Shown piece after piece: positions 502 through 64,000 of a DNA stretch of 64,000 nt (its first letter is position 1; each line of letters opens with the position of its first letter). The translations under genes were made by a program, and so were the position numbers. Source of the stretch: Rhodosorus marinus CCMP1338. Its lineage: Eukaryota; Plantae; Rhodophyta. Where the stretch lies: contig JAMWBK010000001.1 in assembly GCA_029953675.1 (NCBI GenBank), positions 3,410,001 to 3,474,000 of the forward strand, read 5' to 3'. The notes beneath the pieces are model-generated. The model saw only the letters and a program-made list of their open reading frames with translations. It ran no database searches and was not told where the DNA came from.

Positions 502-1680
502 ACGAATCTAAAACGTCGTGACGTGACTTAGAGAGCCAGCAGCCCTCTCAACGGTTGCACTACCTGGCAATGTTGGAACCCCACGCTTACGTTCATTTGC
601 TACGCATCCTCCAAGCACCAATCAAACTTGAGAGTGAGCGATCAAAACGAGAACCGGTCCGTACCATCTTTTCCTCAGATCGTTAGACGATCAACGACTC
701 CATTCCACTTACCACAAGCGGGTCTGCTACTTCTCACGCAGTCGGTGGCATGGGTAGTCAGGAAATCTCGGAGAATTAGGGTGGGGGAGGGGAAGCGGCT
801 CTTGGTACGTACTCAGCCAAAATTTGCCACATACCTGGACATCCACACCAGAACGCTAGAGCGCATCATGTGCAAAGCGTAAGCTACCGTTGATCCTCCG
901 AGTAGGGAGTTTCAACCTATCTCTGATCAGGGAATGCACATTAACGGACTCCCAACAAAGCCTGCCGTCAGTTACCCTCCCCCCCCGCAAACTAAGTCTA
1001 GCCCAATTTTCTAAATCACCCTCCTAGGACTTGACATCATTTGATACATTCCAATAAACATAATTTTCACACTCCTTATCGATCGAACAACTTCTCCATA
1101 ACCCCCTGATTACATTTATTTTGGAGAGAGGATGGACTTCTCCTTTGCGCCATACTCAGAATCGGGGTGGTAAACACCATTCCATCGTTAAACCGATCAA
1201 CGACAATTCTGATGAAAGTTCTTCATTTGTTTCGTAAAAAAGCTAAATATATCGTCCCAAATAACCTTCTCTGTCGTCTTAACCAATGCATATCATCGTA
1301 TATACAGATACATTACAACAGAAACCCACCCCCCCGAAAAGGGGGGGGTAGCCTGTTTCACCAGTGCAAGCGCATCCCTGGCCAACAAAAAACTTCTAAA
1401 TTTTAATATTCCGCTGGCTTATTGGCCTGACTTATGGACCACGAGCGGAAGGTTTTTTTTGTCCCCATTAGCATTCGAGACAAATGGAATTTTGGCATAC
1501 GAAAATATGGTGAAAATTGTATGATAATATTAGTAAATAATATTTAGTGCTATATACAAGGGGTAGGGCGTAGTTTGGTGTAAGCGGTTTGCGAGTGTTT
1601 GGGCTGATTTTCTTGATGGGGGAAAAAGATGGGAGTTTTTGAGGAGGATGCGGAGGGTAGAAGTGAGGATTGCGAGAGAT

Positions 1681-1813
1681 TGGGGTTGAGGAGGTGGGGA
1701 GGTTGGGAGATGGGGTTGAGGGGGATGGGGAGGTTGGGAGATGGGGTTGAGGGGGATGGGGAGGCTGGGAGATGGGGTTGAGGTGGTGGGGAGGTTGGAA
1801 GATGGGGCTGAGA
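1681..1813 (+). repeat. G-rich minisatellite, ~31-bp unit (GATGGGGTTGAGGGGGATGGGGAGGTTGGGA), about 4 copies
   Basis: Unit read directly in tandem upstream of the CTD phosphatase start. Confidence 0.9.
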
Positions 1814-1970
1814 TAGGATTGAGGTGATCTTTTAGAAGGGTCACCGGGAATTTTTGTTTGGAAAGAATACTTAGGAGTTTTCAAGGAGAGTATTAAATGT
1901 TTTGTTTTGGTGGTGGGAATTGTGAAAGGGGTAAGGGGAGGCTCTATGAGGAATCTTGAGGGTTCGGGAG

Positions 1971-3600
1971 ATGTCTGTGGATGAAAATGGGAGAGGAGGG
2001 CTTCGGTATCGATGGAATAGGAGAAGGGTGAGGAGTACTGGGAAGGTGTTGAAGGAGGATTGGTTGAGTTTGAGTGGAAGTGAGATTAAGAAGAAGTTTG
2101 GGAGGTTAAAGACGGACGGTTTTGCGCCGAGCGAGCACGCCTTTGTGCTGAAGAGGTAGGAAGGGAGCTTTTGGCAAGTGAGAAGTCTCTTTTCTGACTA
2201 CTGTAGCAAGCTAGCAAGCTAGCAAGCTACAGTCATCAGAAAAGAGTGTTTGTGTTTGTGTTGCAGAGGTGTCGACATTGTAACCGCGGAGACGAACTGA
2301 TACGAAAGGGTGTTTTTCGGCTTGTTTGGCTTGTTCGTTTTTTCTGTAGGTGGCTTGAGTCTTGCCTACTACACTTTGTTCAACTTTTTGAATCAATGAG
2401 TAGCGCCATGGAAATAGGAGTACCTAAACTTGGGCCTACGGCTGGTGAGTTAGGCTGGGCTCTTTCGCAGCAAGTGTTTTTGGAATTTTGGAAAGCTAAG
2501 TACAAGTCCCTGCTCCGTCGTCGTTGCAGGTAATAGTACGGGCGAGGAAGAATCCACGTTGAGTCCTCCGTGTTCAAGTTATAAGATCGAAAGTGTGGCA
2601 GAGAACGAGCCGCTTGTTAACTGTAAGTGTTTTCCTGGCTTCGCTTGGTCTGCGTGCTCGGACTAGAGGTGCTAATGCGCGGCCCTCCATTTTTGTTTTC
2701 CTACAGCTTCAACTGATGTTAATGGAATAAGGATTTGGAACGACGTGGATGCGTTGTCGTTTATCGCTTCATTGCCTCCGCTTTCTAGTATACTGAACAG
2801 GCCGAAGGTTAGGAATTTGGAACTTTTTCAGCACCTGAGGGACTCCTTCGTGTTCACCCTACTTGTCGGGGAACATTTTGCAGATTCACTGAGACTTTCT
2901 CTCTCTTTATCCCTAATATCAGGTCTGCATTGCCCCGAAGGCCCCTGGGAGACCGAGAAGCACGCTTGTTTTGGATCTGGACGAAACTTTGGTGCATTGC
3001 TCGACAGAAGCCCTGGAGAACTTTGACCTCACGTTCCCTGTAAAGTTTCGAGACCATGAATATGAAATATTTGTGAGAAGGCGGCCGCACCTGGAGGAAT
3101 TTTTGGCGGAGATTAGCAAGTCGTTCGAGGTTATTGTTTTCACAGCTTCCCATAGAGTCTACGCGGACAGGTTGTTGGACATCCTAGACCCGAAGGATGC
3201 GTATTTTGACCATCGAGTGTTCAGGGAGTCGTGCCTATTTCATGTTGGGAATTACATTAAGGATTTGAGCGTGCTGGGAAGAGAAATCTCTCGGACTGTC
3301 ATTATAGACAACTCTCCACAGGCGTTTGGCTTTCATGTTGACAATGGTACGTACATGCACACCTGCAGGGAAAGATAGTGGTTCACATCGTTCCGGCTCA
3401 GAAAGTTTCGCTCTGTATGATTGCTTCCAACAGGGATACCAATTTCGACTTGGACTGTGGAAGAGGATGACGACGCACTTCTGCGGCTGATCCCCCTGCT
3501 CAAGGATGTGGCAAATGCCCCTGACGTTAGACCTGTCATACGAGAACGGGTTGGCCTGGGGAAGAAGATCACGGAGCTAAGGGAGCTATCCATGGCCTGA
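1971..3600 (+). CDS. CTDSPL2: CTD small phosphatase-like protein (SCP/FCP1 HAD family, CTDSPL2-like), 6 exons, ~354 aa
   Basis: join(1971..2155,2350..2444,2530..2622,2707..2807,2923..3346,3434..3600) is phase-consistent. Motifs: TLVLDLDETLVH (DxDxT), RPHLEEFL, VFTAS, YIKDLSVLGR, IIDNSPQAF. Confidence 0.9.
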
Positions 3601-7105: not shown

Positions 7106-7754
7106 AAGCCTCTTAGAACATGTTTCAAAAGTACACAGTTCGGTGGGTCTTGTGGACGCTGAAGGAGGTGTTGTACGAGGTAAGATATCCCTCTAGTGAC
7201 AAGGGGGCTTGGAAGGCCTTGGGGCGGGTGAGAGCGGGGAAACATATGTGTAATGGGATTTTGCCACAGAGAATTATGAATTGGTTGGTGCATTCTAAGT
7301 GACTTTTTTCAGAGGGAAGAAGACGTACTCAAGATGTCGTTTTAAGTAAACGTTCTCGCAGGATCTTGTGGAAAGTGAAGGAGGGAGGAGGGGGAGGCGC
7401 TGCACAGTTGAAAGATCTTCAACGGAAGGGGGAGGACGGGTTGGAGGATGGTGAGAAAGGGAACTTTTTGGTGCGGTCCGAATTGACAGAGAAACGATTC
7501 GTTTTTTGGCATTCTGAGTCTGCGTTTCCCAGTGAAGGAAAAACGTATTCTCGCGTGGGTGGTTGTGGAGGGTGAAGGAGAGGTGGAGGGGGAGACTTTT
7601 GCTAAGGAGTTGAGGATTCACTAGTTGGCATTCTGAGGTTTTTATTTTACTTGGTTGAGAGCTATTTTAGTGAGCCCCGAAGGCCTTTGGGAGAGTCGGA
7701 GGGGGTGTTTTGGTTAAGGCCCGAAGCGGGGTTGGTGGATGGGAAGGGGCGGGA

Positions 7755-10044
7755 ATGAACTTTCGAGCTGCGTATTTGAGGAGTTTAGGGTTTGAGCATG
7801 AGAAGATAGCAAAGTCTGAAGTTGGGGCGTTGTTCTCTGAGGATGTTATTCCTGTAAATCAGCTGAGGAAGTTGTGTTTGAGGGTGGGTATCGGATCGAC
7901 GTGGAGGGGGGAGGTGTGGAAGATCATTCTTGGAGTGATTCCTCCGCAGCGAGCTGCTTGGGACTCAACCTCGGAAATTCGGAAGCAGTCTTATGATCAG
8001 CTGTACGAGGCGGCTTCTCTGGTGTTGACTTCAGAGGAACGGACTCGGGAGGATGGGATGTTGGCGGCGTACTCGGTGCACCAGTACTTCCTTCGTCGTG
8101 TATCGAAAGCATCGTCTGCAAAGCTGTATCCGTCTGTTCGGACCGTTCGGAGTTTCTTGCTCAGTGAGGAAGCTGCAGGAGCGCGTTCGGTGCTTCGAAT
8201 CATGCTCCGCGTCTTCAACACAGAGTGGGAGTCATTTTGGTGCGCAGTGAAGTTCATCCAGGCGCAGAGAATAGTAGCGGTCCTCAAACACTCCGGCAAG
8301 CGCCTGCAGTCCTGGGGAGTCGCCTACAGGGTTCGCCTTCTATCCGAGCTACTTGTTCAGAAAGAACCACAGATCGTAAAGACGCTACATGCCACAGGTC
8401 TTCGTGAGGAAGATTTTGCAAAGCTCTGGCTCAGAAACTGCCTCGCTGACGCCCTCCGAGAAGACGACGTCATCGCTTTGTGGGACCACCTTATCGCAGC
8501 ACCGGCAGACTTTGTCTCCCACTTCTCCCTGGAGCTGCTCAAACATCTCGAGCCACAGATCAACGAACTCAAACACGAGGGCAAATCCGAGATTCTTCAA
8601 CTGCTCGCCAACATTCCGCCACTACAAAGCCTGGAAAAGTTCACCCTCCCAGCGGCCGCCGCTACAGCCAGCCTACTGGACAAAAACACAAACCTCGATC
8701 CTCTGCTAACCTTCGACGTGGAATGGCCGCTCCTACGATATGGAGAACGTGGAGGTAAGACTGGATTTCACACACCAAGGGCTATCAAAACAAAAGCTGC
8801 ACTACTCGAAGACGCGGGGCGGAAGACCCGAAACGGACACCAACGATTCGGGATATTTTCTTTCCCCCCACCCACCCACCCACAAGCTCCGCGATGCTCG
8901 AGCTGTTTCTCGCCAAAGAAGTCGGGGAGTAAACAAGAACTGGAGACCAACTCGTCCCAGATGTCTTCCCTTCAAGCTATGGCGCTTGGTCGGAGATTCT
9001 CTGGCCAGACAGGGAACGCCGCAATGACAGAAGAGCGGGGATCGTTGTGCTCGTTGATCACAACGGCCTGATCACCCTATTGCTTCCCTCCATTTGCTAG
9101 TCAAAAGCTTGCGCTGCTGTACTTCGTCAGAACCAGACCAGATCAGGCTCCAAACCCTTCTAGAGGTCGCAAGCGCATCGTTTCAGCTAGGATAGAGAGG
9201 AAACACCCCGTCCTCTTGTTTCGGTTTTCGGGAAAAGGCGAGGTCGTTAATTGAAACCTGTTCTTTTTGTGCTGTCTTCAGTTATTGTGAAGGTAATGCA
9301 GCTGCTGCTGAGGACGAAGGGACTTGGTGGGATGTTCAGCGTTGATAGCTACTACGGCGATCGGACTGAGAATGCGTTGACAAGGTTGAAGAAGCAGATG
9401 TATGAGATTGAGGTCGAAAAGCAGCAGAAGTTGTCGATGCAGTCGGACCCGAATCTCAGGAGTGCTCCAAACGGGGAGCAGCCGATGCGGGTTGGTGGGG
9501 AGCCGACGCGGGTTGGTGGGGAGCCGACGCTGAGAGATAAAAGTGAAGCTTGGAAGGGGGTTCGGCGGACTAGACTACAGGGCTCAATGGATGAGATGAC
9601 GCCGTCTAGCCTGGAAATGGACAACTCGCCTATGGCAAAACACGAACTAGACGCGGATAATATAACTGGCGTGGGAGGCGTGCAGAAAAGTGCCTGGGAC
9701 GGCGAACGAGCGTTTGGCCCCAAGCTATGGCCAACCCTCCTGGAGTCAATATCTGCTGGCTCTAGGGGAGACGACGTCAAGGCGCTTCAAGCGTTGTTGA
9801 TACAGAGGTATGATGCTCAGTTCGTCCGGATGCAAAATAGCTTTTTGATATTCATCTCGACTTAGGTTGACTGCGTTCGTTCGCTCCGTACAGACATGGG
9901 TACTCCAAGGTTCGAGAAGACGGCTACTTCGGTACCCAGACTGTGAACGCCGTCAAGGATTTCCAAGCACACGTGGCCACGCGAGCAATCCCGGTGGATG
10001 GAATAGTCGGCCCAGTAACCTGGATCCACCTCCTCGATTCCTGA
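7755..10044 (+). CDS. TBC1D7-like Rab-GAP-TBC protein fused to two C-terminal peptidoglycan-binding-like (PG_binding_1) domains, 3 exons, ~558 aa
   Basis: join(7755..8754,9282..9807,9894..10044) = 1677 nt, phases 1 and 2 match. The N-terminus MNFRAAYLRSLGF...WRGEVWKIILGVIPP resembles TBC1D7 (NFRSVYYEKVGF...ALVWKVLLGILPP). Splicing reconstitutes WPLLRYGERG|VIVKVMQLLL...VDSYYGDRTENAL, and a second copy GSRGDDVKALQALL...DGYFGTQTVNAVKDFQ...VDGIVGPVTW follows. Confidence 0.75.
9481..9529 (+). repeat. In-frame 21-nt tandem duplication (P[M/T]RVGGE x2) in the linker between the PG-binding domains
   Basis: GCCGA(T/C)GCGGGTTGGTGGGGA repeated about 2.3 times. Confidence 0.85.
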
Positions 10045-10995
10045 GACAAGAACCTTTCAAGAAAGGTCGGGAGAAGCCACGTTGGACCTTCAACTATTTA
10101 TGGAACAAAGTTTCCTCAACAAACACCTTTGAAAGAACAACATTGTACATAGTGTCAGGTGGACTCTGCAAACCACGGTTGCTTCAATGGACAGACTTTC
10201 AGATTTAAAAGGCAATAGAAAATCAAAAGCTTCCAATCCAGATCTGAAGACCTCACAAAGAATCAAGAAAGTTCTCTACACAAAACTCGCCTCTTGCGCA
10301 TCCAAACTGTGGAGAACGCTTTTGAGAAACTCACCGGAACCGAACCATCCGCCATCCGAGTTTTGTTTTTGCACACACGACATTTTCAATCAAAACAAAC
10401 CACAAATTGACTGTAAGGGATCGCCGAACTCGATCTTATAAGTGAAAAATGGTGAAAATATTGATTTAGACGATATTAATAATAGCAAATATTGAAATAT
10501 ATATTGTATATACGTTTTCTACGTCGAGTCAATTTGTTTTTTGCCATTTCATGTTGTTCAGTTTGTGTGGACGATCGAATTTCCTGTAGAAAGAGGTCTT
10601 TTGCAAGGGTTTGTCAATGGCATTGGGGGGGAGGCGCTTGTTGAGCGGCCCCGGGCATTGGGAAGATGAGCACATTTCTTATAAATCATCATCGTTCAGT
10701 CAGAGACAAGGCTACTCTGTGATTCGAGAAAAACTACGCCAAGCAGAGAGAGGATACGCCTCTAAAACTTGGTTGTCAGGTGTCGGATACAGATCGCTTC
10801 GGGGTTCGTTCTTCCATTCGGTGTGCAAAAGGGTTCTGTTCCCATCGCTAGGTTGTGGAGGGGAAGTAGGGTCTGGAGCTCTTGCGGTGATCGCTAAGGA
10901 AAGTTATCTTCGGGTTTCGCTAGTTACATATCTTTTTATTTTTCATTGGCTCTTTAGATATCATAAATCATAAGATGTGCGAGTTTCTCTGCATT

Positions 10996-12576
10996 TCAAG
11001 CGACTATGGGCTGCGCCTGCGTAGTTTCCTTCGCCAGTCGTGGAGGCTGGCTGTCCAGCACAAGCTTCTTCAGGAGAACACTCTTCATAATGATGCTCCT
11101 CAGTCCGTAATATGGAATTTCGAAGAAGATGTTCTGGAGGAGCGCCTTCGAGCCTTGAGTGTCGTACAAGATCCGAAGCGTGTCTACGCTTTTCGCCAGA
11201 GCACTCTTGTTCATATCACGGTGAACGATCACGTCTGTGTTCCACGGGTCGATCTCGACCATCTTGTCCGCATAATGCGCACGGAAGAAGCGGGCATTCG
11301 GCCGTTGATTCGCCATGCAAGCTGAGAACGAGAAAGTCGAGTTCGAGATCGCCAGCACGTCACACTGCGACAGAATGTACCAGTCCGGGAACATTCCTGC
11401 TCCGAGATCGGCAAAGTTCTCCGGCAGCTCAGCTCCCAAGGACTCCGAGGTGACTGGGTTGAATTTCGCAAAGTCCCTCAGGACAGTATCAACTTCGTCC
11501 GATGCAACAAAAAGAACCGGGTTCTCCAGCGTCGGCCAAATCTCCTCCAACCATTCCAAGTACCACTGCGTCGGAGCAACATATCCGAAAGACGATGCAG
11601 CAATGTTCTTGTAGTCACCAAGACGAAGGTGACATCCCACCACTGTCCTCTTGCCGTTTTGCCTCAGCTTGTCGTCAATGACCTTATCAAAATGGTTCTT
11701 TAGCGAGGGCACTGGGGTGAAGATGTCCTGAATGCTCTCCTTGAATTGTCTATACACACTTGTGTGCCACTGGAACCACCCCCAGATGTCCACGTTCACT
11801 GGCAAGTCGTTAGTTTCCGCGCTGAGCTGCGACGGGAGAATCTCTGGCACCGGCATGCCGTCGTTCGACTGGGTGATGTACTGAAGGAATTCGTCCGTAA
11901 AGGTAGAGTTTGCCTTGGTCTCACGGGTCTCAATGACCGCCGGAAGGGCGCGCTGGACGACATCATCCTGCAGTCCAAAGAGATCCTTGCCGACCCAGTA
12001 GGGAACCTGCACCTCCGCATCGACGAGCTTCGCATAGCACCTCAGGAAAGCATATTGCAGCAACTGGTTTCCAAATCGTCCCAGTTCTCCGAAGCCTGTC
12101 ATGGTGATGACTGGTTTACCGTGGTACGGCTCGAAGGGGGCAATATTTGCATTCAAAGGAGGCGTTACGTTTCCCAGGCTGAAAATCCGGCTCAGCGCAA
12201 TCTCAGTTTCCTTCTTGTATTTGGTGCTCTTTCCGCCTTCGACGTTCATTTCCTCTTCATCAGAAATGGAAGAAATGGTCATCGACTCAGATGTGAGAGA
12301 GTCCTTGTCATCCTTCTCGATCATGCTCTGGTAGAAGCGCACGATCAGCTCTGCACCATCATCACCAAGTTTCTCTCGGACATCTGATGCACTGGAAGCA
12401 TGATCCAAACCAGCCTGGGAGAATACCATATCCAGAATACCGATCATCTCACGCGATTTGAGACCCACGTTTCCAACGTCTCCATTCGACTGAGCCAGCT
12501 TTTCCAGAACAGGGATCCAAGTGCCCTTCTCCATCTGATCTCGTTCCAAAGATTCACTAGTGCTTAAAACACCCAT
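10996..12576 (-). CDS. GT11 / alpha-1,2-fucosyltransferase-like glycosyltransferase, cyanobacterial-type domain; 5' end uncertain
   Basis: Long single ORF with GRFGNQLLQYAF, WGWFQ, HLRLGDY, LFVASDE and DWYILSQCDVLAISNSTFSF, the GT11 motif set. First in-frame ATG is at 12576; upstream exons are possible. Confidence 0.8.
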   Translation of the reverse strand: MGVLSTSESLERDQMEKGTWIPVLEKLAQSNGDVGNVGLKSREMIGILDMVFSQAGLDHASSASDVREKLGDDGAELIVRFYQSMIEKDDKDSLTSESMTISSISDEEEMNVEGGKSTKYKKETEIALSRIFSLGNVTPPLNANIAPFEPYHGKPVITMTGFGELGRFGNQLLQYAFLRCYAKLVDAEVQVPYWVGKDLFGLQDDVVQRALPAVIETRETKANSTFTDEFLQYITQSNDGMPVPEILPSQLSAETNDLPVNVDIWGWFQWHTSVYRQFKESIQDIFTPVPSLKNHFDKVIDDKLRQNGKRTVVGCHLRLGDYKNIAASSFGYVAPTQWYLEWLEEIWPTLENPVLFVASDEVDTVLRDFAKFNPVTSESLGAELPENFADLGAGMFPDWYILSQCDVLAISNSTFSFSACMANQRPNARFFRAHYADKMVEIDPWNTDVIVHRDMNKSALAKSVDTLRILYDTQGSKALLQNIFFEIPYYGLRSIIMKSVLLKKLVLDSQPPRLAKETTQAQPIVA

Positions 12577-13012
12577 TCTCAACGTTTTCACAAAAAAAAT
12601 TACACTGTTCAAAAAGACGCGACTGATTCTTCAAGCGATCCCTCCCCCTCCCAAACGGTCAATGCACAGTCGTTCCTCCGTGCACACAAGTATGTCTAAA
12701 GGCGATAGCAGTCAAGCAACCCATTCACGAACACCCACTTTTCACGAACCCCACAAACACATAGCCCAAAACAGATCCACCACCCAAAAAGCCACAAAAA
12801 AAACGCTCCTCTACCACAGAATACACCCAAGTCGTTCAACAGATCCTCTACCCACGATCCTCCCCTCACACCCTCCCAAATCTACAGCCCATCTCACCCT
12901 TTCTTATATAGTAGGAGATGGAGTCTCAAACCTAGAAAACCTTACACCCCCCACTATCACCATCAATATCCAGCTCCCCATTTTTCTTCCCCCTTAACCT
13001 CCTACCCATTCC

Positions 13013-13016
<4 letters not shown>

Positions 13017-13044
<28 letters not shown>

Positions 13045-13051
13045 CACACAC
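13017..13051 (+). repeat. (CT)n microsatellite followed by (CA)n
   Basis: Read directly. Confidence 0.9.
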
Positions 13052-16000
13052 ACAAACACAAACACACCCCCATAAAATAAATATAAAATCCATTAAATCC
13101 TTCTTTCATACGCTCACAAGACATAAAAATCCTTCCAGATTTCCCATCCATCCCCCCCCCCTCAACATCATCTACAAATTTACGCCCATACGTTTCCCCA
13201 TTCTTGATCCAAAGCCCTAGCCTCATCTTCCATTAATTTATTTCAGTTAAAAAACAAAAACAAAAAACAACTTTTTTAAGTAGAAAAAATATTGACCCTC
13301 TCATCCGGGTGTTAGAGTGCGAGGGGGAGGGGGTGTGTGCAGACGGGGGGTGCCTTTTTCTTTTAGTTTTTAAATAGCACTAGTAAGTTTCTACACTGCA
13401 CTACCCCCTCCCTACTTTCTCTCAACTCTAAAAAAGAGTTATATAGTCTTCGAGAACCATCTAAAAATACATATATATCCAGCCTCTATTGGCCACATTT
13501 AGTTGGGATTTCTTAAATTTATGTGTAGTAGTTGTCCCCCCTCTCTTCTTTTTAGTTCTAAGGAACACTTCTTATGAAGTTCTTAAGGGGGGGCTAGTTT
13601 GTAGATTGACCTTCGTCCCAAAATTTGTATAGTCACTGATCGCTTTATAATTATTTAGAAAAACAATATTAAGCGGAACAAAAAAAATGAACAAGAACTT
13701 TGTTGGGTTTTTAAATGAAAAACAAGATCGGCTGAAATCAACAGCATTTTTCTATTAGCTCAACGGACTCGAGAGTTGGGGAGGAAGAATGGAGAGAGGG
13801 GAGAGAGAAGGTGGGAGGGGCTGGGGGGCGGGGGGGGCCAGGGCAAATAATCCAAAAAATAACTAATTTTCTTATTCACGGACTGATTTTTTTAGGTGTT
13901 AAAATTTTGAGGGGATGAGGCCACAGCAGTTTCGAGAAGCCAGTTGGCTCAAGAAAATAAATAATTTTCTGATAAGTTCTTCCGTTCCTTCTATATTTTG
14001 ATTTACCAATGGGAAGCTAGTACGCAGAAATGGGTGTAATTGTATTTTAAAAGCCGAAATACCTGTGGAGGATGTTCTCGAGAAGGAGGGGGTAGATGTT
14101 AATTTTTGGTTCATATTTTCTGCGGAACTGGAGTTGTACAATGTTTTCTACTCTGTGTAACCACTCGATGTTGGTTGCTGTTTATTGGAAGTAAATGATA
14201 GTTTTGTATTTTAATACGGTGGGACTTCCCCGCCCCTCCCCCCCTTCGGGTAGGAGTGCCGCTAGACGATCTTAGAATATTTCCCATAAAATATTGTACA
14301 AACGAAAGTAACCGTAATAGATTAAAAGAATAAAAAAGAGGGATTTTAGGAATGGGTTTTTCAAGTGCCAAGAATTGGGTCTATTCTTGTAAACTTATTT
14401 TGTATTTCTATGTTTTCAAATGGGGGTCGTGAGCCTCTCGCTCCTACGTGTTTGGAGGTTCTCCTTAGAATTTCAGTACAAATATCAATTGGTTACAAAT
14501 GAAGTATCACGTCCATCCAATAGCGCGCAGTGGACCGATTTGGATCCACGAAACTGGCCAGATTCATGTTCGAAAGTGACGGTTGGCGGCCCTCATCGAA
14601 ATCTCATTAATTAAAATATATATTTCATTACTTCAACGGGAAAACTCAATCCATTCGCTAGGAGGTTTGAGGCCCGGGCGAAAATTCTGAATCTAAATAT
14701 GTCCCTGGAGATTCTGGGGGGGGGGTTAATTTGTGTCAGACCGGTTCGCCCCTTTATTTCGATGTTTTTAACTAGTATTTTGGGCACGGATCAAAGTGGC
14801 GGCACACGCGAGTTGCTCAATTGCTGCACCACAGTGTGGATTTGGGGGGTAGGGGGCTGATTCCCTACCCTCGCCTGCTCAGGTGGAATAACATGATTGA
14901 TCAAAATTCCTGTGTGCTGGAGCTCCAGACTCTTCCAAAATCAATCTGAAGCGATAATCTACCAATAGAAAGTTAAATCGGATCTCTAAGATGCCTTTTG
15001 GTACTTGCTTGACGATGGTTCGCTAATACTTCTTTTTCTCCTTTTTCGTTGGTCAACAAAGTACCCGTTTGCCATCCCCATGAAGTTTTTCGTGAGGCCA
15101 AGACGGCAATGTCCATGAACCTTTTCGCAGAAACGACAAAAAAATCTCGTTCCCACCGCTCTTGACCCCCTTCTGAAATTTACAGCCTGATCGTAACCCA
15201 CCCCTCCTCTCCGCGAACAGGCCTATACGATGTCATTATATTGAAATAATCTTTCGTGGCCAGACGAGTGATCTCGGGATTGGCTATGTTCTCTTTCGGC
15301 CTCTGCACTCCGCCACCAACGGAAGACAAATGCTGAATCCTTATTATTTGGTAAAGGAAACCCCTTCCCACAAGTCTCCTCTTTTTCCCCTCGTCCTTGG
15401 CCAAAAAAAAACCGATTGAACACGACGTACAATACGAATACAACAGACTCGATGGAGTTGTCGCGTACAATGTCCGGTTGGGCGGTTGCAATGTATGTTT
15501 TCGCGAAAACCCTATACAGGCACGTGCGGGTGTACTATCGAATGTACGGTCCATTGCATCGGTATGGGAATCCCTCCGGACTCGTGAAGGGAGGGGACCG
15601 AAAACTTTCTCAAATTCACCATACCAAGGATTGTTGAGGGAAACAGAGAGCATTGTCAAATCGACTCGGAACGACAATACCCGATTTCAAATACATTTGA
15701 ACCGGATGGTGACGCGCTCATATTCAAATTGCGGAACGTGGATGAGGAAGCGGGAGGCTTCGGGATTGCTGATTCCTCTTCTCGGGATAATCAACACCCC
15801 CCAGGTTCCACTGGAACGATCTCAGATACCCTCCCTCCCAACAGATAGCGCTACTGCTTTCGGTCCAGAAAGCGAAAGCCGCTGCTCGAATACCCCACAC
15901 CTTGGAATCGAAAATGATTAGCATCGAAACCCTCGATACACACACACCCTCGCTCTGTTAAAACCCCCGCTCCACCTTTCGAGCCTGATGGCGGGCTCTC

Positions 16001-32100: not shown

Positions 32101-32181
32101 TCGGTAGTGTGAAGGAGGATCTGCTCGATCGCGTGGGTTTTTGTGTTTGGTTTTTTGGAAGTGTTTTGGGAGCATCAGACC

Positions 32182-37567: not shown

Positions 37568-37893
37568 CTAGATGATAAATGGGGATGAAGGAATTGTATT
37601 TGTTTTTGTGAATGTTTGACGTATGACGGATGAGCGGAGGTCTGCGGGATGGTGGGGAGGGTATGGATTGAAGGCGTCTGGCCTGGTGTTCATGGTGACT
37701 AGGACTTTGTTTTTGAGCTCTGTCTTGGTCTTAGGGTGGTGCTTGATTTGGGCTTCGTCGTGTAGCGCAGAGGGTTTGAGTTTTTGTTTCGTCGCGATGA
37801 GGAGTTCTGGCATTGTGCTCTTGCTCTTCCTAGAAGCGTCGTAAGCTGCGAGGAGTTTTTTTCCCTTCTGGAAACCACCTCTCTGTCCCGACA
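37568..37893 (-). CDS. Hypothetical basic protein (MSGQRGGFQKGKK...); may be the last exon of a longer gene
   Basis: Open frame of more than 105 codons from the ATG near 37893, and further upstream without an ATG. No family recognised. Confidence 0.3.
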
Positions 37894-55012: not shown

Positions 55013-58000
55013 GTACTGTCCTATTTACCTGCACTGCAATGCGTACCTGATACATAGTGACAAGCGCACGAGAAATCGGTGATCAGAGTTTCCTCGTATT
55101 CTCAGGTACGCTTGTCCGTCCTCACGACGGGTAGGAGCTTCAAAGTTGGTTCCGTCTGCACTCCAGCCGCCCCACTACGAAGCCAAATTCAGAACGCACA
55201 GTTTCAATTAGCATCGAGTATCCAGACTACGCACACTCTCGTTCAGGCTGGCAACTGAAGAACTGGGAAAATCTCAAGAGAACACATTCAACGAGTCTGC
55301 GTTCTTGATCGGTCACTTCTCCTGCCCCATCTCCTCCTCAACAACCTCCTCACAGTTCAGTATTCTTCCCCAGTCCCCCTCTCCTTCCTGCCTCCCCGCA
55401 CAGGTGCTACCCGTTTTGCATCTGCCTCGGGATGGGTCCAGAAAAACTATAATCAAACAAAAGGGTCATGGCTGCCCCATGTTACCGCATTTGGCAGGGA
55501 AGCCTTACTGCACAAATACTCCCCCTCAAATACTTTGAACAACTACAAAAGTCCCCAATTCCATATCGTCGGTTAGCATTTAACGCTAGTACACAGTCCA
55601 TAACAACCCCCCCTTAACAAGATTGGTCTTCGATGCCACTGACTTAGAGGAACATTGTCCAAAAACCATGGGCCGGCAAAAAAATTCCGCGCTTCACAAA
55701 ACAAAAGCCAAATCCCTCTTTCAGAATTTCAAATAAAATTGATTAACTCAAATGTTCAAATTTTGAACCCGAACAAGCGCCCCACCTTCCACTTTTCACG
55801 TTTGCAGGATAAAATGAGTTAATCTCGGCGTTACTTTTTTGTGCAGCCTACGGGCATATCTTCTATTTGTTTTTGGAGTATCAATCCTTCAACAGATATT
55901 CAATCAAATAAAATTGTAGATCTGCTCTTGAAGGCTTCCACAGCATTATCAATCAATGTATCAATCAATAAACAGAGGAGAAATGGTACCGGGCCAGCTG
56001 TATCTCGTAGCCTGTAATTGCAGATATTAACACATAGGATAAGAGCGATGATTGGATATATACTCTTATTTTTCTAAACTTATCGATATTATAGGGATAT
56101 ATGGGCTTCTGATTCGATAGTATAGGCAAGTAAAGTTGGGAACGAGAAGATGATTGGATAAAGTCCTTAGTTGGGTTCTTATTGATTTGTCGGGAAGACT
56201 TACGAGGCCTCGCAAGGTGGTAGCTTTTGCGGGAGGGCGGGAAGAAGAATTGCAGGCTATGATCACAACGCGCCATGCCGACCAACAACTCAGTTCGGTG
56301 TGAGACGGGGACCATATTGCGGTTCTATGACGAGCTCCTACCACTTGATAAGATCTCCGAGGCTGGTGTCATCCTTCACGTCGTGATAACAAACGGCCAC
56401 AAAGTTGCGGGGCAGTCTTGCGGCACTCGGTTGGTACGTCTATTGCGAGAGCCAAATTGATCACCATTCACTGGGCGAACGGACAGGCATGTTTTTCAGC
56501 TCTTTTGGGTTTCTAACTTGCAAGCCACCCTGTCTCGGTCCTCACAGTACATATCAGACAGTCTCCACAAATCGTTGCCTTTTGCTTACAACAACAAACC
56601 ATTGCCTATAAAACAGACTTTCCTGACGTGGCCAAGAATCAATTGACGAGCTTCGCAACGGCATTGATGATCGCGAGGTGCAAGTGCAGACTAAAGTTAC
56701 CCACTGTCCCCAAAAGAGCATGCATTCTAGAATCTTTTGAGGGTGGTTTCATATGTGGTACCAAACCAAATTCGTTGCCCTTACAAGTTCAAAAGGTTCT
56801 CTTGGCGCTTGAACAACCATCCTCGTGGGCACTACATTAGCTGTAAAATATTTCAGTCAGTTCCTTCGAGACAAAAACGACGGCTAGTTATATCTGGCCT
56901 TGTATCGAATGAGTTTACTTAAAATTCGCCAACTTAGCATCTTACTCGCTCCCTCAGCCGGGGTCATGGGGTCATACTGATAGCGTGTCATTGGAATCAT
57001 CCCCCACGGCTGGGGCTAGAATCCGCAGTCTAGGTGGAGACCACGGCGACAGCTGCCTCCTTACAATTCCTGCTCATACAGGTCTAACGAGGACCGGACC
57101 TCCACCTTCTTCACCTTCTATTCCGCGACAATAACCCTGAGGGGAAGATGGATAGGCTAAACCAAAGGAAGCGGGCTCAAAGACCAAGGCCGCATTAGAA
57201 CGCCACTGCATACTGCTCAACGAAGAGAGTAAATGCGAGTCTGCGTCTCGTTGCGATCGCGAAAACAGTCCCAAACCCAGGTCGCCCCTGAGCACACGAT
57301 GAATCCAAACACCTCAATAACATGCTGAACGAACACAGCCGTCTGCAGCGTTCGTAGGGGGGCCTCCTGGTACACAACCTCCTTGTAGTGGCGCATAAAG
57401 TGAGCAGCCGCACCGCGCTGGCGAATCGTTAAAAGCCGACCTCGTCAAGACGCCCCGAGCCGTTGCCATCACTTTACGCCGCCCTAAGCAGAGCTTTTTA
57501 CTCCGAAGCGCTACCAACGCGAGGGTACCTCAATCAGCCCTCGAGCATAGCTTCGTTCCGCCTGTCGTTTAAGCGCTTTGGGTTTGTGGACAGTGCTGGA
57601 GTCCTCTGGTTAAGAAAGTCCTTTTGGGGTCAACCCCCACAACTAGGGCGCACTTCCAATTTCTCAGTCTTGTGGTGGACTTCGGCCGCCCTTATTATTG
57701 AGGCTCGTTCTTTGCGTCGAGTGCATTACTCCCTTCATGGGGGGTGCTAGCCTTGCAATAGAGTCGCCGTTGATTGAGTTTTTGCTGCGCTGTGGTAGGT
57801 AGGTAGCTCCCGAATAAAGGCTATGAGGTCACCGATACGAACATCGCCGTCGTGTCACGAAAGCTACTCGAAAGCTGCTTACAGCCAAAAATTCAAAACA
57901 ATACCTCTTTCCTTCCGAAAACAATCATTCCATGCGTTTCACAAATTGGAAAAGAAAAAACCCAACGCTTCTTAGGACAAAGAGAACAAAACAACAACAG

Positions 58001-60269: not shown

Positions 60270-63200
60270 GGATCAGTCGTGAAACGTTTGGTGGACATAT
60301 CCCAACGTATTAAACCTCAAGTCCTTCGACCAGGTCCAATAGCTCGCGGTGCTGTGTGGCGGGAAAGCCTTGTCAACTTTTGCTGTCCGGATAGAGCCTC
60401 AAACGAGTCCCTCCACTTCAGCACAAAGAAAACAAGTGCGATTGCTCCCAGACCTCCCCGCTCATGGCGGACAGGTGTGTTCAGTCCAATGGAGAGGAGG
60501 TGCTGCGGACTGCCGAGACACGGAAGGTATCCCCATCGGCTACCATCAAGAGACCACTCGAAGGCCGATACCACTCAGTAGGCGGTCGGTTGAACCAATC
60601 GGCTACGGAACAGAGACTGCCGGTCACACTCACATCACCAGGGCGCAAAACATCCCGCCCGTGGGAGCGCTGATGGAAATGCACTTGTATTGAACCGGTT
60701 GGGTAGTGGCCGATTGAAGCACGTAGTCGTGCTCGTGATTGCGCCAATGCCATTGTCTTGTCTTTACTTTTAGGGAGTCAGCATTCCCGATTGTCTTGTC
60801 CTGACGCCACTCACTAGTCGGTCGGTTGAGAACCGAGCCTGCGCTCACATACAAGATATTCCAATAGAGAAGGTTGCACGCACATGAAGTAGATATACAC
60901 TCTCATCTAGCTTGATCACACAGGACGATTGGAACCTTGTCAAGCAGGCTAACGGGATCTGGTCCAAAAGGACACTAGGGCTTTCGAATATCAGCAGCTC
61001 CGGGGATGCACATAGCTAAGAGGACAAGCGTGTGCCTCTAACAAAGCAAAACAGCACACAGCCAACCAAATGAGATTCAACGACCTCGGGCAAAAGAGGG
61101 ACGTGGATGGGAAGGGAAACGAATTCTCTCCACAAGGCTAAGTAGCGCGGAGAGGCCAAATGTAATTCGTCTATCTAACCTCGGGGAAGAGTGCGAGTGC
61201 CCGGCAATGATCCTCCACATGCACCCCCCTGCGGACAGAAAAGTTTATCATCCCAGAATGTTTATTTTTCAGACCTTTACTCCTCCAGCGTCGTGAGAAT
61301 CAGAAACTGGCGGGCTCACCGCCTCTTTTTGAGTTCCAAGGACTATATAATTCTCTCTGTCAGCGCGGAGGACGTGAGTAAAGCGCCCAAACTCGGAAGG
61401 CTTACTTCCAGACAACCTGTAGTTAATTTTACAGAATTCTATAAAAGAGACGACCTTCCCATGTATTGCAAAGATTTGCCCTTCTCGTCTTGCAAACCGT
61501 TATAACCAAAATAAATACAATGTATGTCTCCGAGCAATCCCTTGATCCGGTCTTGGCAAGTAAATATTAAACAAATTATGATGATCTCTTATCTCCATTT
61601 GTCCCCTGAAATTTAGCTCAAGAGAGAGAATGCACAAGAAGAAGTCTTCCACACCCCCACCCCCCTTCGTATTTGCCTTACAAACTAAAGCATTTAAGTA
61701 GGAGTTACTGTACTTTCAATAGATAGATCTCAAGTAAACGTCATACACCACACCCCTGTAGAGAATCCCTTTGTTTTAGAGAAATTGAGTAAACACGTTT
61801 TTATCAATTTTCGAGCCTTGCCTCAATCCCGCCAGACAATAAAACTTGGCTTGAAGTTTTATTGTCTTGCGGGCATCATTGTGGATATCAACTTGAGGGC
61901 CAAAAAGAGAAGAGAATCCGCCCCCTACAAAGCGCATGGACATGTGACTCAAAGTGGAAAAAATAGGATCTCGCACTCATAGGGTCGCCTCGGTCAGCAA
62001 GGCTAATTATATTCTCCCGAACACCCCCCCCTTTCCCTTTCCATTTTCCCCTGGAATGTGCATCATCATGAATTGTCACCCGTTCTTCCTTAGGAAGCGG
62101 GGTTCTGTCAGTCAAAATTTTGACATCGTTGATCCCTTTGCAACAATCTACGTCAAAATCATTCTTATTTTTGGTGAAAATAATAACACCCATTTTGTCA
62201 AAGATTGCGAGATATGTACCCCCTCTCTGATAATCTACTCGATAGTTCCTTCTTAAGTTTTTGCTAATTAAGTAGGGCTTTGGTTCCGAGCTGTATTTCC
62301 GGAAGCTGTATTCTGGATAAGGCGTACTCTCTATTTTCCAAAAAACTTGAGCACCAAAACAAAGGAAAACTTGTGGTTGGCTCAATGTTGGCCTAGGAAA
62401 GTAGAGGGAAGGGGGGGGGAAGCTCCGCTTTCATTTAGCTTTCACTTAAAAATAGTGGAAACGGAACAACCAATGATATCTTCACAAAACAAAGGGGGGG
62501 TTGGGTTGGACCCAATAGACCATTTTATCATTCATTTTGTAAGGAACGTCGAATTTTTCAAGAAAAATGTATGCATGATTCTGCCTAATTACTGAAAAAT
62601 GAAAAACCAACCGTGGGAAAAAGCTTACGGGTTGGGAAGCAGGAAAATAATCCCTCCCCCCCCTCCCTCCAACCCCATTCAAGGAGGGGGAGGGGGTGGA
62701 AGACTACCTCTTCACCTCAATTCCTTTCTTTTTGGCAATAAAAAAACACCTTATCGTCAATAAAATAAAACATAGTCGTAATTACTTCTACTTTTCAAGC
62801 ATGGGCAAACCCCGACTGAGTCAAGGGGTGGCGGGGTTCAATTTACCTAAGGGGTCGGACGTGTTCGACAAAAAAAAAATCTATTTTCCCTTGAACAGAA
62901 GATGAAAGTGTAAAAAAGATCGGATGCATTTACAAACAGCGAAAGGGGTGGGGTGTGTGTGTGTGTTTGGGGGGGAGCGGGGCTGCGGGGTTGGGAAGAG
63001 ACGGAGAGACTGGTGTCCTTTTTTTTCTTTTTTTTGCGGGGAGGAAGGGGGTGGGATAAACCTTTTTTTAGGCAATGTTTTTTGTGTTGTTTTTTGGAAT
63101 TTTTACAGCGGGCAAGGTTTTCAGGTCCAATGTTCCTTCTAGTTTTGTTTGTTTGTTTTTTTCTCGCTTGGGGTGGGAAGTTCAACCATTTGTCAGGTCG

Positions 63201-63533
63201 GTGTGCCCCTCTCTTTCCTCGGAGGGTTTTTTTGTTTGGACATGTGTCCTTTGAAAATAGTAAGAGTTTTGATGGTTTTGAGAGGGAAGGTGTTTGAAGG
63301 GTTAAAACTAGTTTTGGAAAACTAGTTTTTTTGGTGCGTGAGGGTGAAGTGGATGTAGGTGGTTTGTGGTGGTGGGGGGGTTGAGATGTTCGGGGGATGT
63401 ACTGGCAGAGGATGGGATGTAGAGGGAGCTTGTGTGTGTGGGAGGGAGGGAGGGAGGTCTGCGAAGGTATGTATGGAGTTGAGAGGTGGGAGATGGATCA
63501 GGTGGGACGCGGGGGGGTCTGTTTGAGGACCTA

Positions 63534-64000
63534 ATGGGTGGACTGGAGGGTGGAGCAGCAGCTTCAAGTGGGCCTCGGGAGAAGATGGAGAGTTTAGAGA
63601 CCTTTTTGGTGGCGGAGTCGCTGGATTGGCGGCCTCAAGTTAACTCGAAGGTGGCTCTGGTGAATTCTGAGAGTTTTCTGATGAGCTGGTTTGCTAACCG
63701 TATGGGATCGTCAAAGTCCAGTGTAGAGTTGGAGAGGGGACTTCACGTGTGTGCAGTGGTGGCCGGTACAAATAAGGATTTTGGGAGGGTTTTTGTTGAT
63801 GTTGTAACTGTTCCAAAGACTGTAGAGCTTGTGCACAAGCACAAGAATGATGGCGCTATTCAGAAGAAGCTCATGTTTTTAATTTCCTTGTTGGCTTCGG
63901 ATGAGACGCTTCGGGAGAAACTCTGCGAGGGCGGTATGGGGGAGGCAGTGCTGGCTGTGATGAACAGGCACTTCACCTCAAACGTCACCGTGTTGGAGAG
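63534..64000 (+). CDS. Armadillo-repeat-like helical protein, 5' part (runs off the window end; an upstream exon is possible)
   Basis: Open frame of more than 155 codons to the window end that is absent from the ORF track: MESLETFLVAESLDW...VELVHKHKNDGAIQKKLMFLISLLASDETLREKLCEGGMGEAVLAVMNRH, an ARM-like 'L..GG...vl..M..h' pattern. Confidence 0.65.
   Translation, partial: MGGLEGGAAASSGPREKMESLETFLVAESLDWRPQVNSKVALVNSESFLMSWFANRMGSSKSSVELERGLHVCAVVAGTNKDFGRVFVDVVTVPKTVELVHKHKNDGAIQKKLMFLISLLASDETLREKLCEGGMGEAVLAVMNRHFTSNVTVLE

Follow-up and report, generated by a model that had tools for sequence, protein, structure and literature searches.

Skewed AT-rich islands as probable transcription-unit boundaries in the nuclear genome of a red alga, Rhodosorus marinus

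Yeasts and unicellular fungi carry 'opposite GC skews at gene ends', with a C-biased 5' end and a G-biased 3' end. At human CpG-island promoters, GC skew lies downstream of start sites and is linked to R-loops (Ginno et al., 2013, PMC3787257; Kellner et al., 2015, PMC4617957), and in Trypanosoma brucei the GT-rich tracts of transcription start regions are nucleosome-depleted and drive orientation-dependent transcription (Wedel et al., 2017, PMC5579346).

The stretch analysed here (the window, 64 kb) belongs to the nuclear genome of a red alga, Rhodosorus marinus, whose assembly of 31.19 Mb holds 8392 genes, or 3.7 kb per gene (PMC10250338). It spans positions 3410001-3474000 of JAMWBK010000001.1 (GCA_029953675.1), a contig that encodes an aminotransferase and an FGGY kinase protein. 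Public gene calls covered the left 55% of the window, up to 34.8 kb, and none were obtained for 34.8-64 kb. The gene set used for orientation comprised 14 genes, 12 of them public calls, with LeuRS and the right-edge gene being homology- or model-based. A Pfam search gave no match across ~25 kb of the window.

The skew switch at AT-rich cores

A sequence-only reading had described recurrent AT-rich cores with C/A-rich DNA to the left and G/T-rich DNA to the right on the + strand. The order C-rich, AT-rich, G-rich was confirmed far above chance: right-minus-left GC skew was positive in 19 of 20 AT-rich islands (GC<0.38 per 200 bp in the 64-kb window), and all 11 cores listed in that reading showed positive GC-skew jumps (+0.15 to +1.17). 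At the 19 objective cores in the 64 kb, which were selected solely by GC<=0.335 in 150 bp, the jump ran from minus to plus on the + strand in 18. The mean jump at these cores was +0.41 vs 0.006±0.063 at random, and none of 2000 random-position sets reached the observed mean. Strongly skewed 150-bp windows (absolute GC skew >0.45) numbered 5393 against a shuffle mean of 11 and a shuffle maximum of 121, and made up 8.3% of the sequence vs a median of 2.6% (~3-fold) in 46 unrelated, mostly eukaryote-like control contigs. The A/T half of the description turned out to be weak (AT-skew jump in 11/19 cores, mean +0.06), the asymmetry being chiefly one of G versus C.

The skew was local, with the averaged core-centred profile back to zero by ~±600-700 bp, and one-sided islands were frequent (19452, 22113, 31921, and 49088). 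Cores were spaced at ~3.4 kb vs 3.7 kb for genes, which amounts to about one core per gene. Comparing the cores revealed no common motif beyond AT-richness, and comparing the skewed tracts gave no indication of a repeat-family origin, as they were not copies of one another. G-quadruplex potential, suggested earlier for the G-rich flanks, was modestly supported (13 canonical motifs in tracts vs 2.3 expected from shuffles), but at about one motif per two tracts it is not a defining property. Tract GC was 0.41-0.52 with 368 CpG observed vs 431 expected, and CpG observed/expected for the window was 0.87. Table 1 lists the features.

Table 1. Skewed tracts, cores, and switches, in coordinates of the 64-kb window
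Feature	Position	Strand	Details
Left flank, island 1	910..1131	−	C-rich on + (G-rich on −); no annotated gene start adjoining; nearest − gene, HAD hydrolase, starts ~2 kb leftward, outside the window
AT-rich core, island 1	1400..1550	.	TATATACAAG at right edge
G-rich, nearly C-free tract	1447..2211	+	G 307, C 55; skew +0.70, +0.9 over 1600-1800; 31-nt G-rich tandem repeat (1676-1812) and two G4 motifs
NIF-phosphatase gene	1971-3600 (annotated CDS)	+	entered by tract 1447..2211
G-rich tract	7113..7963	+	skew +0.48; spans RabGAP-TBC start (ATG 7755); no preceding AT-rich core
Convergent 3'/3' spacer	10046..10995	.	RabGAP (+, stop 10044) vs GT11 glycosyltransferase (−, stop 10996); A/C-rich, then AT core 10440-10560, then G/T-rich; skew weak (−0.16/+0.24)
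Tract upstream of GT11 (ATG 12576)	12516..13503	−	G-rich, C-poor on −; sense skew +0.5 to +0.86; contains (TC)14 repeat (13017-13044)
AT-rich core	13250..13700	.	right flank 13665-14216 G-rich on +, without annotated gene
C-rich to G-rich switch	16096..16571	.	C-rich 16096-16311, G-rich 16353-16571; within 7.5-kb stretch without annotated gene
G-rich tract	19488..20284	+	skew +0.49; across gene E start (annotated CDS 20112-21152); one-sided, core near 19452
C-rich-on-+ flank	21761..22088	−	left of core 22113; 600-900 nt past gene E stop; no annotated − gene start
XRCC4-like start tract	25119..25726	−	G-rich on −; first ~530 nt of CDS (ATG 25647) plus 80 nt upstream; CDS third-position skew +0.34
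Full island	27393..28505	.	C-rich 27393-27662, AT core 27640-28020, G-rich 27855-28505 (G 236, C 48, skew +0.66) into first PRA1 gene (ATG 28372)
Island	31027..32227	.	weakly C-rich 31027-31236, AT core 31200-31960, G-rich 31855-32227 leading to second PRA1 gene (ATG 32182)
Two neighbouring switches	37232..38673	.	first: C-rich 37232-37511, core 37400-37570, G-rich 37453-37806; second: C-rich 38071-38275, then G-rich 38451-38673, just past 3' end of − strand ORF 38657-39358 (sense skew there −0.46)
Island	39467..40929	.	C-rich 39467-40078, core 40320-40400, G-rich 40738-40929; C-rich part covers a second − strand coding ORF (39505-39798), upstream of 38657-39358, and reaches farther upstream
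LeuRS-internal island	48848..49578	+	intron ~48848-49201, 3' part AT-rich
Island	55248..56265	.	C-rich 55248-55468, core near 56090, G-rich 56035-56265; region for which no gene calls were obtained
G-rich tract	62823..63818	+	G 368, C 115, T>A; from core 62700-62940 across + gene start
Right-edge gene		+	first in-frame ATG 63534; runs off the window

Strand composition along genes

Read on the sense strand, GC skew was positive in the first 300 nt of all 14 genes. In the 400 nt 5' of start codons it averaged +0.36 and reached up to +0.9, being positive in 12 of 14 cases and above 0.3 in 7 of 14; in the 400 nt 3' of stop codons the mean was −0.04 (negative in 7/12). Third-position GC skew fell from +0.38 in the first 300 nt of the CDS to +0.10 in the remainder and +0.06 in the last 300 nt, and third-position T-over-A skew from +0.29 to +0.11 and +0.12. 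The shift along the CDS was greatest at third codon positions, as it should be where a force on the nucleotides works against protein constraint. Third-position skew was sense-positive for genes in both orientations and, in this window, was never inverted at 3' ends. Where an island had a gene start on one side only, that side was the stronger one in 7 of 8 islands; island sides differed 2- to 3-fold, and the strongest tracts all ran into gene starts.

Relative to the window average, tracts changed by −13 points in C, +10 in G, +4 in T, and −1 in A, a spectrum unlike the one that plain C-to-T deamination on the non-template strand would leave. Upstream ATGs were not depleted over the 600 nt 5' of start codons (chance number), and the ATG-free stretch comprised only the final 80-145 nt before the start codon, in 5 genes, so that much of each tract may precede the real start site or sit in a spliced leader, and not in a 5' UTR that ribosomes scan.

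The 5'-to-3' gradient recurs at orthologous genes of two related algae without sequence conservation, and is far steeper in one of them. In this relative (L068), where the aminotransferase is 61% identical and the XRCC4-like gene is kept as its convergent neighbour, third-position skew of the aminotransferase ortholog per 300 nt from the start codon was +0.95, +0.36, +0.02, −0.08, and −0.22, and that of the XRCC4 ortholog +0.84 and +0.53; skew of the pterin dehydratase ortholog ran from +0.29 at the 5' side through −0.42 to −0.59. The L068 XRCC4 gene start carries the C/G switch without any AT-rich core. A third relative (L070, 56% identical) showed a gradient of the same sign at lower amplitude. 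Composition, its orientation with respect to gene calls, the silent-site gradient, and the recurrence in relatives are all direct observations.

Transcription starts, replication origins, and other sources of the skew

The sequence-only reading had taken the polarity to be independent of gene orientation, with transcription-coupled skew insufficient to explain it, and had put forward dense bidirectional replication origins as its first option; a polarity tracking transcription direction was named there as evidence to the contrary. The dominant signal does follow transcription, both upstream of start codons and over the opening 300 nt of all 14 genes. The apparent independence is partly a logical slip, because islands upstream of + and − genes mirror one transcription-oriented feature: a + gene has its G-rich zone to the right of the core and a − gene its C-rich zone to the left, so every boundary reads C-rich, AT-rich, G-rich on the + strand.

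That each core is a fixed bidirectional origin, with skew arising from leading/lagging mutational asymmetry, is highly improbable, even though the minus-to-plus polarity common to 18/19 cores is of the origin type, and the switch also appears at one convergent 3'/3' spacer and at silent sites inside LeuRS. In other eukaryotes, origins can be found at AT-rich islands between genes and at promoters prone to R-loops, an overlap discussed for human CpG-island promoters (PMC4412123). Against origins, the skew is gone by ~600 bp and does not reach toward the next core, core spacing matches gene spacing, island sides are unequal with the gene-start side dominating, third positions stay sense-positive in both gene orientations without inverting at 3' ends, cores have no consensus element, and the L068 XRCC4 start switches without a core. 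The amplitude of 0.5-0.9 also argues against them, as replication-associated nuclear skews are not known to approach such values. The polarity proposed for convergent 3' ends was present, at low amplitude, at 10.0-10.9 kb, but the other three of four convergent junctions (24.8, 32.8, and 51.4 kb) had no switch. Skew that follows transcription and recurs in relatives makes it probable that the islands are transcription-unit boundaries, not dense replication origins.

The C-left/G-right islands are probably a by-product of a gradient along each transcription unit, with a G-rich, C-poor coding strand at gene starts, and a strong form of the known gene-start effect fits better than replication origins. 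From the AT-rich core on the start side, the coding strand would be strongly G-enriched and C-depleted with some T-runs, over a zone of 300-900 bp that extends through the start codon and dies away within the initial 300-500 nt of the CDS, while 3' ends would be neutral or weakly C-biased. The cores, at about one per gene, are most likely promoter or terminator gaps, poor in nucleosomes, that separate transcription units, and not likely replication origins. The proximate cause would be a nucleotide-level force tied to transcription start and not selection on proteins; it may be strand-asymmetric mutation or repair near initiation, or selection on DNA or RNA. I infer that the skew is tied to the sites where transcription really begins. 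As likely effects, the non-template strand and the nascent RNA would be rich in G, may be prone to R-loops or G-quadruplexes and may wrap nucleosomes poorly, and transcript 5' ends would be C-poor and weakly base-paired. R-loops are favoured by G-rich RNA over a C-rich template.

Selection on the transcript would have C-poor 5' ends avoid stable G:C stems and thereby keep the stretch from cap to start codon and the early CDS unstructured, or would tune elongation via CTP demand, as in the adaptive proposal of McLean and Tirosh but with the sign reversed. The skew does run through the start codon into the CDS, covering its first 300-500 nt, and is maximal at silent sites, C is swapped mainly for G at about constant GC content (constraint-like and less deamination-like), and the pattern is kept in three species at 56-61% protein identity. 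Nevertheless, this explanation is unlikely: tracts reach 400-800 bp 5' of start codons with a chance number of upstream ATGs, which is odd for ribosome-scanned sequence, skewed flanks exist without a coding gene start, and translation initiation does not explain the 3'-end C-bias in L068.

Such flanks without an annotated gene start lie at 910-1131, 13665-14216, 21761-22088, and 27393-27662, to either side in the convergent spacer at 10.5 kb, and 3' of the HAD gene that lies immediately outside the left edge of the window. Under the transcription-start explanation, the best reading takes them for transcripts from the same cores that are unannotated, antisense, or divergent. They are also compatible with the fallback offered earlier, a strand-asymmetric process on nucleosome-depleted DNA, and so is LeuRS. 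In that gene the core listed at 49020-49190 lies inside an intron: third-position skew was −0.12 and −0.30 in the exon before the intron and +0.50, +0.38, and +0.10 in the exon after it. This restart within a single + strand gene is not predicted by a simple one-gradient-per-gene rule, and would suit a core-centred process independent of gene orientation and productive transcription, for example repair or chromatin asymmetry at nucleosome-free AT-rich patches. Weak skew at 3' ends (RabGAP/GT11 spacer, the − strand ORF ending near 38650, and the HAD gene) points the same way, as do jumps >+0.15 in 11 of 13 cores without an adjoining confident gene start. As the general source of the skew this process is nonetheless distinctly improbable, given that the strongest tracts all enter gene starts, that island sides are unequal, that G-rich tracts occur without an AT-rich core at RabGAP (7113-7963) and in L068, and that 3' flanks are unskewed on gene average.

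Comparison with known systems

Like the skew jumps at replication origins (bacterial oriC and human skew N-domains), the islands show an upward jump on the + strand where synthesis would diverge; they differ in range, amplitude, spacing, gene-start dependence, and silent-site behaviour. Fungi resemble this locus in several respects: GC skew varies along each gene and reaches promoters and 3' UTRs, shows up at fourfold-degenerate sites or third positions, shifts the choice of amino acids at gene ends, and gives all intergenic regions one polarity regardless of gene orientation. A and T are little affected in both, so simple deamination is not the explanation in either. In contrast to fungi, the sign is reversed, with 5' ends G-biased and 3' ends neutral in R. 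marinus or C-biased in L068, the amplitude greatly exceeds theirs (up to +0.9 upstream and +0.95 at third positions in L068), and the kingdom is a different one (red algae).

Human CpG-island promoters, as far as the accounts named at the outset describe them, share with this locus a G-rich non-template strand from the promoter on, of the same sign, and mirrored skew at head-to-head promoters, whereas the tracts here, by their GC and CpG content, are not CpG islands. The human skew study reportedly finds positive skew at 3' ends too, unlike the neutral or negative 3' ends seen here, where R-loops are a predicted property. T. brucei start regions resemble the tracts in their G-over-C and T-over-A skew and in the mirroring of divergent start regions, and the words enriched on the sense strand here (TTTTT, GTTTT, GGGGG, and GGGAGG) are like those of the GT-rich tracts. 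Trypanosomes transcribe long polycistronic units that lack regulated promoters, whereas the genes described here are monocistronic and intron-containing, with an AT-rich core.

Strand-skew switch at AT-rich cores

The sequence-only reading had described AT-rich islands that recur along the window, each with C-rich DNA on its left and G-rich DNA on its right on the + strand, and this switch was confirmed. Cores picked solely by a GC content of at most 0.335 in 150 bp showed a positive GC-skew jump in 18/19 cases, with a mean of +0.41, and all 11 cores named in that reading jumped in the same direction (+0.15 to +1.17). In 19/20 islands defined more loosely, at GC below 0.38 per 200 bp, the right flank exceeded the left in GC skew. 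Random positions gave a jump of 0.006 ± 0.063, and none of 2000 random sets reached the mean seen at cores. Windows of extreme skew numbered 5393, compared to a mean of 11 in shuffled sequence, and were ~3 times more common here than in 46 unrelated control contigs.

Averaged around cores, skew ran at −0.1 to −0.2 between positions −600 and −200, at +0.3 falling to +0.07 between 0 and +600, and was back to about 0 by ±700 bp, with a mean core spacing of 3.4 kb. The T/A component of the switch was weak (11/19 cores, mean +0.06). The skewed flanks, hereafter tracts, can be nearly free of C: 1447-2211 contains 307 G and 55 C, and 27855-28505 contains 236 G and 48 C. I found no motif common to the cores, and no Rfam family, tRNA or repeat family linking the islands. 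Short palindromes of C-runs and G-runs lie in or beside AT-rich cores at 1326-1350, 14222-14258, 43695-43769, and 62653-62700, such as C7-GAAAA-G8 and an inverted repeat of 30 nt (87% complementarity); they resemble miniature C-to-G switch points and could fold into hairpins.

Gene orientation, silent sites and related algae

The window is eukaryotic nuclear DNA of 48% GC with few introns per gene. Its aminotransferase (23.6 kb) and FGGY kinase (4.7 kb) match JAMWBK010000001.1 (GCA_029953675.1) residue for residue, and the window spans 3410001-3474000 of this contig. The assembly, of R. marinus CCMP1338 (Stylonematophyceae), comprises 31.19 Mb, 8392 genes, and 24,821 introns (PMC10250338). Public gene calls were used for the window up to 34.8 kb and for 5.3 kb to its left, and genes in the right half were derived from homology and coding models. 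A codon-usage model and a 3-periodic Markov model identified the right frame in 15/15 confident ORFs; when retrained on their own predictions, these models called G-rich tracts coding, and they were therefore not relied on for unannotated regions. Splice-site motifs were uninformative as a guide to strand, and reconstructing exons from annotated gene length gave a unique structure for gene E only, with at least 65 possible models for NIF and over 50 for RabGAP. Two pooled Pfam searches of six-frame ORFs from regions without known genes (~13,000 residues) returned nothing beyond NIF, pterin dehydratase, and a weak match to DUF4504.

Genes in the window and just to its left (+ strand coordinates of the window; negative values lie outside it)
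Feature	Position	Strand	Source
Rad21	ends at −3101 (start codon), outside window	−	public gene call
HAD hydrolase	−1976 to −1167, outside window	−	public gene call
NIF phosphatase	1971-3600	+	public gene call
FGGY kinase	4693-6210	+	public gene call
RabGAP-TBC with PG_binding_1 domain	7755-10044	+	public gene call
GT11 glycosyltransferase	10996-12576	−	public gene call
Gene E	20112-21152	+	public gene call
Aminotransferase	23639-24823	+	public gene call
XRCC4-like	24913-25647	−	public gene call
PRA1, first copy	28372-29104	+	public gene call
PRA1, second copy	32182-32770	+	public gene call
Pterin-4a-carbinolamine dehydratase	32889-33797	−	public gene call
ORF	38657-39358	−	coding models
Further coding ORF	39505-39798	−	coding models
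LeuRS, at least 5 exons	47212-51241	+	homology/coding models
Protein kinase	about 51655-52381	−	homology/coding models
Gene running off window edge	from about 63534	+	coding models

Several of these genes merit a remark of their own. The LeuRS gene is of the cytosolic type and looks complete; neither protein search nor exact look-ups returned a LeuRS product of the R. marinus genome, although the neighbouring aminotransferase was returned, and the gene may be absent from, or differently modelled in, the public annotation. Part of the protein kinase ORF shares up to 75% identity with numerous eukaryotic Ser/Thr kinases. At its 3' end the RabGAP-TBC gene encodes a peptidoglycan-binding domain (PG_binding_1), according to both the public call and a reading of 9865-10044, a combination that seems unusual for a eukaryotic RabGAP. 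The two PRA1-family genes stand in tandem, 3 kb apart, each with an AT-rich core and a G-rich leader, and the aminotransferase and XRCC4-like genes converge with 90 bp between their stop codons.

The polarity of the islands had been read as independent of gene orientation, but the dominant signal follows the genes. Sense GC skew in the 400 nt upstream of start codons averaged +0.36 and was positive in 12/14 genes, reaching +0.46 to +0.82 for NIF, RabGAP, GT11, gene E, both PRA1 genes, and the gene at the right edge, and over the first 300 nt of the gene it was positive in 14/14. The 400 nt downstream of stop codons showed no general effect (mean −0.04, negative in 7/12), 3' flanks at −0.14 to −0.46 being found in only four to five genes. 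Where just one side of an island faced a gene start, that side was the stronger in 7/8 islands, e.g., +0.82 vs −0.32 at 1472, +0.73 vs −0.32 at 27950, and +0.59 vs +0.01 at 19452. The same polarity appears upstream of + and − genes because the G-rich coding strand of a − gene is C-rich on the + strand and lies left of the core; equal polarity is therefore what a transcription-oriented feature predicts.

Silent sites behaved accordingly. In ten CDSs with known starts, third-position sense GC skew was +0.38 in the first 300 nt, +0.10 in the remaining CDS, and +0.06 in the last 300 nt, and the corresponding T-over-A skews were +0.29, +0.11, and +0.12. Third-position skew was sense-positive in + and − genes alike, peaking at the 5' end and close to 0 by the 3' end. 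Between the opening 300 nt and the remainder, the shift was largest at third positions (+0.28, compared to +0.20 at second and +0.18 at first positions). The force at work therefore acts on nucleotides rather than on proteins, is oriented by transcription, and decays from the 5' end. The lack of inversion at 3' ends in the window counts against a sawtooth that is blind to gene orientation.

These results also bear on the proposal that the AT-rich cores are densely spaced bidirectional replication origins. A minus-to-plus switch on the + strand at nearly every core is what such origins would leave, but the skew does not persist from one core to the next, vanishing well within the core spacing, and it depends on transcription direction at silent sites, with the side facing a gene start being the stronger in 7/8 islands and a single exception in LeuRS. 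Replication origins are thus not supported as the explanation. Instead, what is seen is a red-algal variant, strong and reversed in sign, of the GC skew at gene starts and gene ends, and the AT-rich cores mark the boundaries of transcription units.

Contigs from two related algae carry the same signal. L068 (a Logan contig from run SRR22824282) encodes a 61% identical aminotransferase followed by a convergent XRCC4-like gene, as in R. marinus; L070, a JGI transcript-type contig, encodes a 56% identical one. The gene pair is equally close or overlapping in both (325-2276 in L068, 130-2060 in L070), at 56-61% protein identity. On the + strand of L068, the leader plus the initial ~475 nt of the aminotransferase gene had skews of +0.74, +0.58, and +0.53, after which the value fell to about 0; nearing the 5' end of XRCC4, which is encoded on the − strand, it ran through −0.29, −0.48, −0.70, and −0.75. 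Third-position skew per 300 nt was +0.95, +0.36, +0.02, −0.08, and −0.22 in the aminotransferase ortholog and +0.84 and +0.53 in the XRCC4 ortholog. The next gene, a − strand pterin dehydratase ortholog, had exons at +0.29, −0.42, and −0.59 from 5' to 3', and the 3' ends in L068 were clearly C-biased. Between the XRCC4 start and the 3' end of the dehydratase gene, L068 switches from C to G without an AT-rich core (GC 0.52-0.60). Two + strand ORFs of this contig (2498-2749 and 2834-3187) are artefacts: the strand they occupy is the G-rich antisense of the dehydratase gene, over its 3' half. L070 showed the same sign as R. marinus at lower amplitude. Since the skew is common to orthologous genes that have diverged well past silent-site conservation, something maintains it actively. 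A protein search and a metagenome scan for close relatives, made with LeuRS, yielded nothing above 45% identity; these contigs served as composition controls only, and the contig of the best LeuRS match lacked such a skew pattern.

Composition of the tracts and cases away from gene starts

Relative to the window, the tracts have lost 13 percentage points of C and 1 of A and gained 10 of G and 4 of T. As C is mostly replaced by G, simple C-to-T deamination of an exposed strand is a poor fit, an argument that McLean and Tirosh made for yeasts as well (PMC3315797). On the sense strand of the tracts, TTTTT occurs 106 times vs 32 for AAAAA, and 17-22 of 24 tracts show enrichment of GGGGG, GGGAGG, and GTTTT. 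G-quadruplex motifs (at least 4 runs of at least 3 G, loops up to 7 nt) number 13 in 26 tracts vs 2.3 ± 1.4 in shuffles, and the majority of the 19 in the whole window lie in tracts and are directed away from a core. The suggestion that the G-rich flanks could form G-quadruplexes thus holds in so far as their potential exceeds what composition predicts, but about half of the tracts have no such motif, and it is not the whole explanation.

Other identities were considered for the tracts and rejected. CpG islands are ruled out by a tract GC of 0.34-0.52 and by 368 CpG vs 431 expected, and methylation-driven CpG decay by a CpG observed/expected ratio of 0.87 in the window. The tracts are not copies of a repeat, which dismisses a transposon or repeat origin, and they are not coding sequence. 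Nearly C-free sequence is rich in stop codons, hence the short ORFs in the tracts, and the annotated N-terminus of NIF, which lies inside a G-rich tract, is perhaps a spurious call. Local tandem repeats occur in the NIF leader (a 31-nt G-rich unit ×4.5 at 1676-1812) and at 59321-59447 (a 63-nt unit ×2), and the GT11 leader contains a (TC)14 repeat at 13017-13044.

Over the 600 nt preceding start codons, upstream ATGs occur at chance frequency; in five genes, just the final 80-145 nt lack them. Much of each tract is therefore probably outside the scanned 5' UTR: it may precede the start site or belong to a spliced leader, or the alga may tolerate upstream ORFs.

The interesting residue is the few cases that are independent of gene orientation. 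Skewed flanks without an adjacent annotated gene start were found at 910-1131, 13665-14216, 21761-22088, and 27393-27662. The convergent spacer at 10.5 kb is skewed on either side (−0.16/+0.24), and so are the 3' sides of a − strand ORF ending near 38650 (sense −0.46) and of the HAD gene immediately beyond the window edge; the convergent 400-bp spacer between LeuRS and the kinase shows no switch. The 7.5 kb between the divergent GT11 and gene E (12577-20111) have no annotated gene or Pfam match and contain four AT-rich cores, with a switch at 13504, 16380, and 19452 and no jump at 14347; this stretch likely harbours unannotated transcripts or decayed genes.

LeuRS is the clearest of the leftover cases. 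Its third-position skew runs +0.40, −0.03, −0.06, +0.29, −0.12, and −0.30 over the first three exons and then, after an AT-rich intron (about 48848-49201), +0.50, +0.38, and +0.10. Besides a perfect 12-bp hairpin at 48872-48898, GAAACCGTAGCC GGGG GGCTACGGTTTC, the intron carries TATATACAAG at 49070-49079, a word that also edges the NIF promoter core (1551-1560). Rfam gave no match; an internal promoter, or else some element of the intron, may be marked here.

The simplest reading of these cases is that AT-rich cores would fire transcripts both ways, antisense and internal ones included, and that any transcript would turn G-rich over its initial few hundred bases. A core-centred process other than transcription, or replication initiation, is possible for the same cases. 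A bolder version, which I regard as unlikely, is suggested by the restart of silent-site skew across the LeuRS intron and by the skewed 3' flanks: cores would be sites from which a very strong one-stranded loss of C sets out anew both ways, regardless of where genes begin and end, either through pervasive two-way transcription initiation with a new near-start mutation spectrum, or because, in a compact red-algal genome, promoter gaps also serve as replication start sites. If true, Rhodosorus and its relatives would be a natural system for tracing the cause of gene-end skews, which has been sought since the work on yeast.

Relation to known skews

Gene-start GC skew, and skews of opposite sign at the two gene ends, are known from mammals, plants, and yeasts. 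The red-algal version has the mammalian sign at the 5' end, mirrors what yeasts show, and reaches a very large amplitude, with nearly C-free runs of several hundred bases and silent-site skew of up to +0.95 in L068. A literature search found no report of skew in Rhodosorus nuclear DNA. A lineage with a signal this strong could separate mutation from selection, and its tracts allow testing whether skewed sequence sets promoter direction or forms R-loops. In these genomes, skew is also a cheap predictor of gene starts and orientation, and when strong, it misleads ORF-based gene finders.

The closest match in kind is the opposite skew at the two gene ends of single-celled fungi, where a GC-skew gradient runs along genes and into promoters and UTRs, is present at fourfold sites with A and T flat, and automatically gives each intergenic region one polarity (PMC3315797). 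The monotonic 5'-to-3' change is shared by the window and L068, and so is a synonymous-site signal that affects A and T little. In contrast, the fungal sign, where the coding strand favours C at the 5' end and G at the 3' end, is opposite in all three red-algal sequences, and the amplitude here is much larger. As for extension beyond the CDS, it is pronounced upstream in R. marinus and averages close to zero in the 3' flanks.

At human CpG-island promoters, a G-rich non-template strand is reported to favour R-loops (PMC3787257, PMC4617957). The 5' sign is the same, here measured from start codons, with upstream ATGs suggesting that part of the tract precedes the start site; the R. marinus tracts differ from these promoters in not being CpG islands and in the behaviour of 3' ends. 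The nearest functionally tested analogue is a promoter of T. brucei that is GT-rich on the coding strand, directs transcription in an orientation-dependent manner, and excludes nucleosomes (PMC5579346); similar words are enriched on the sense strand of R. marinus.
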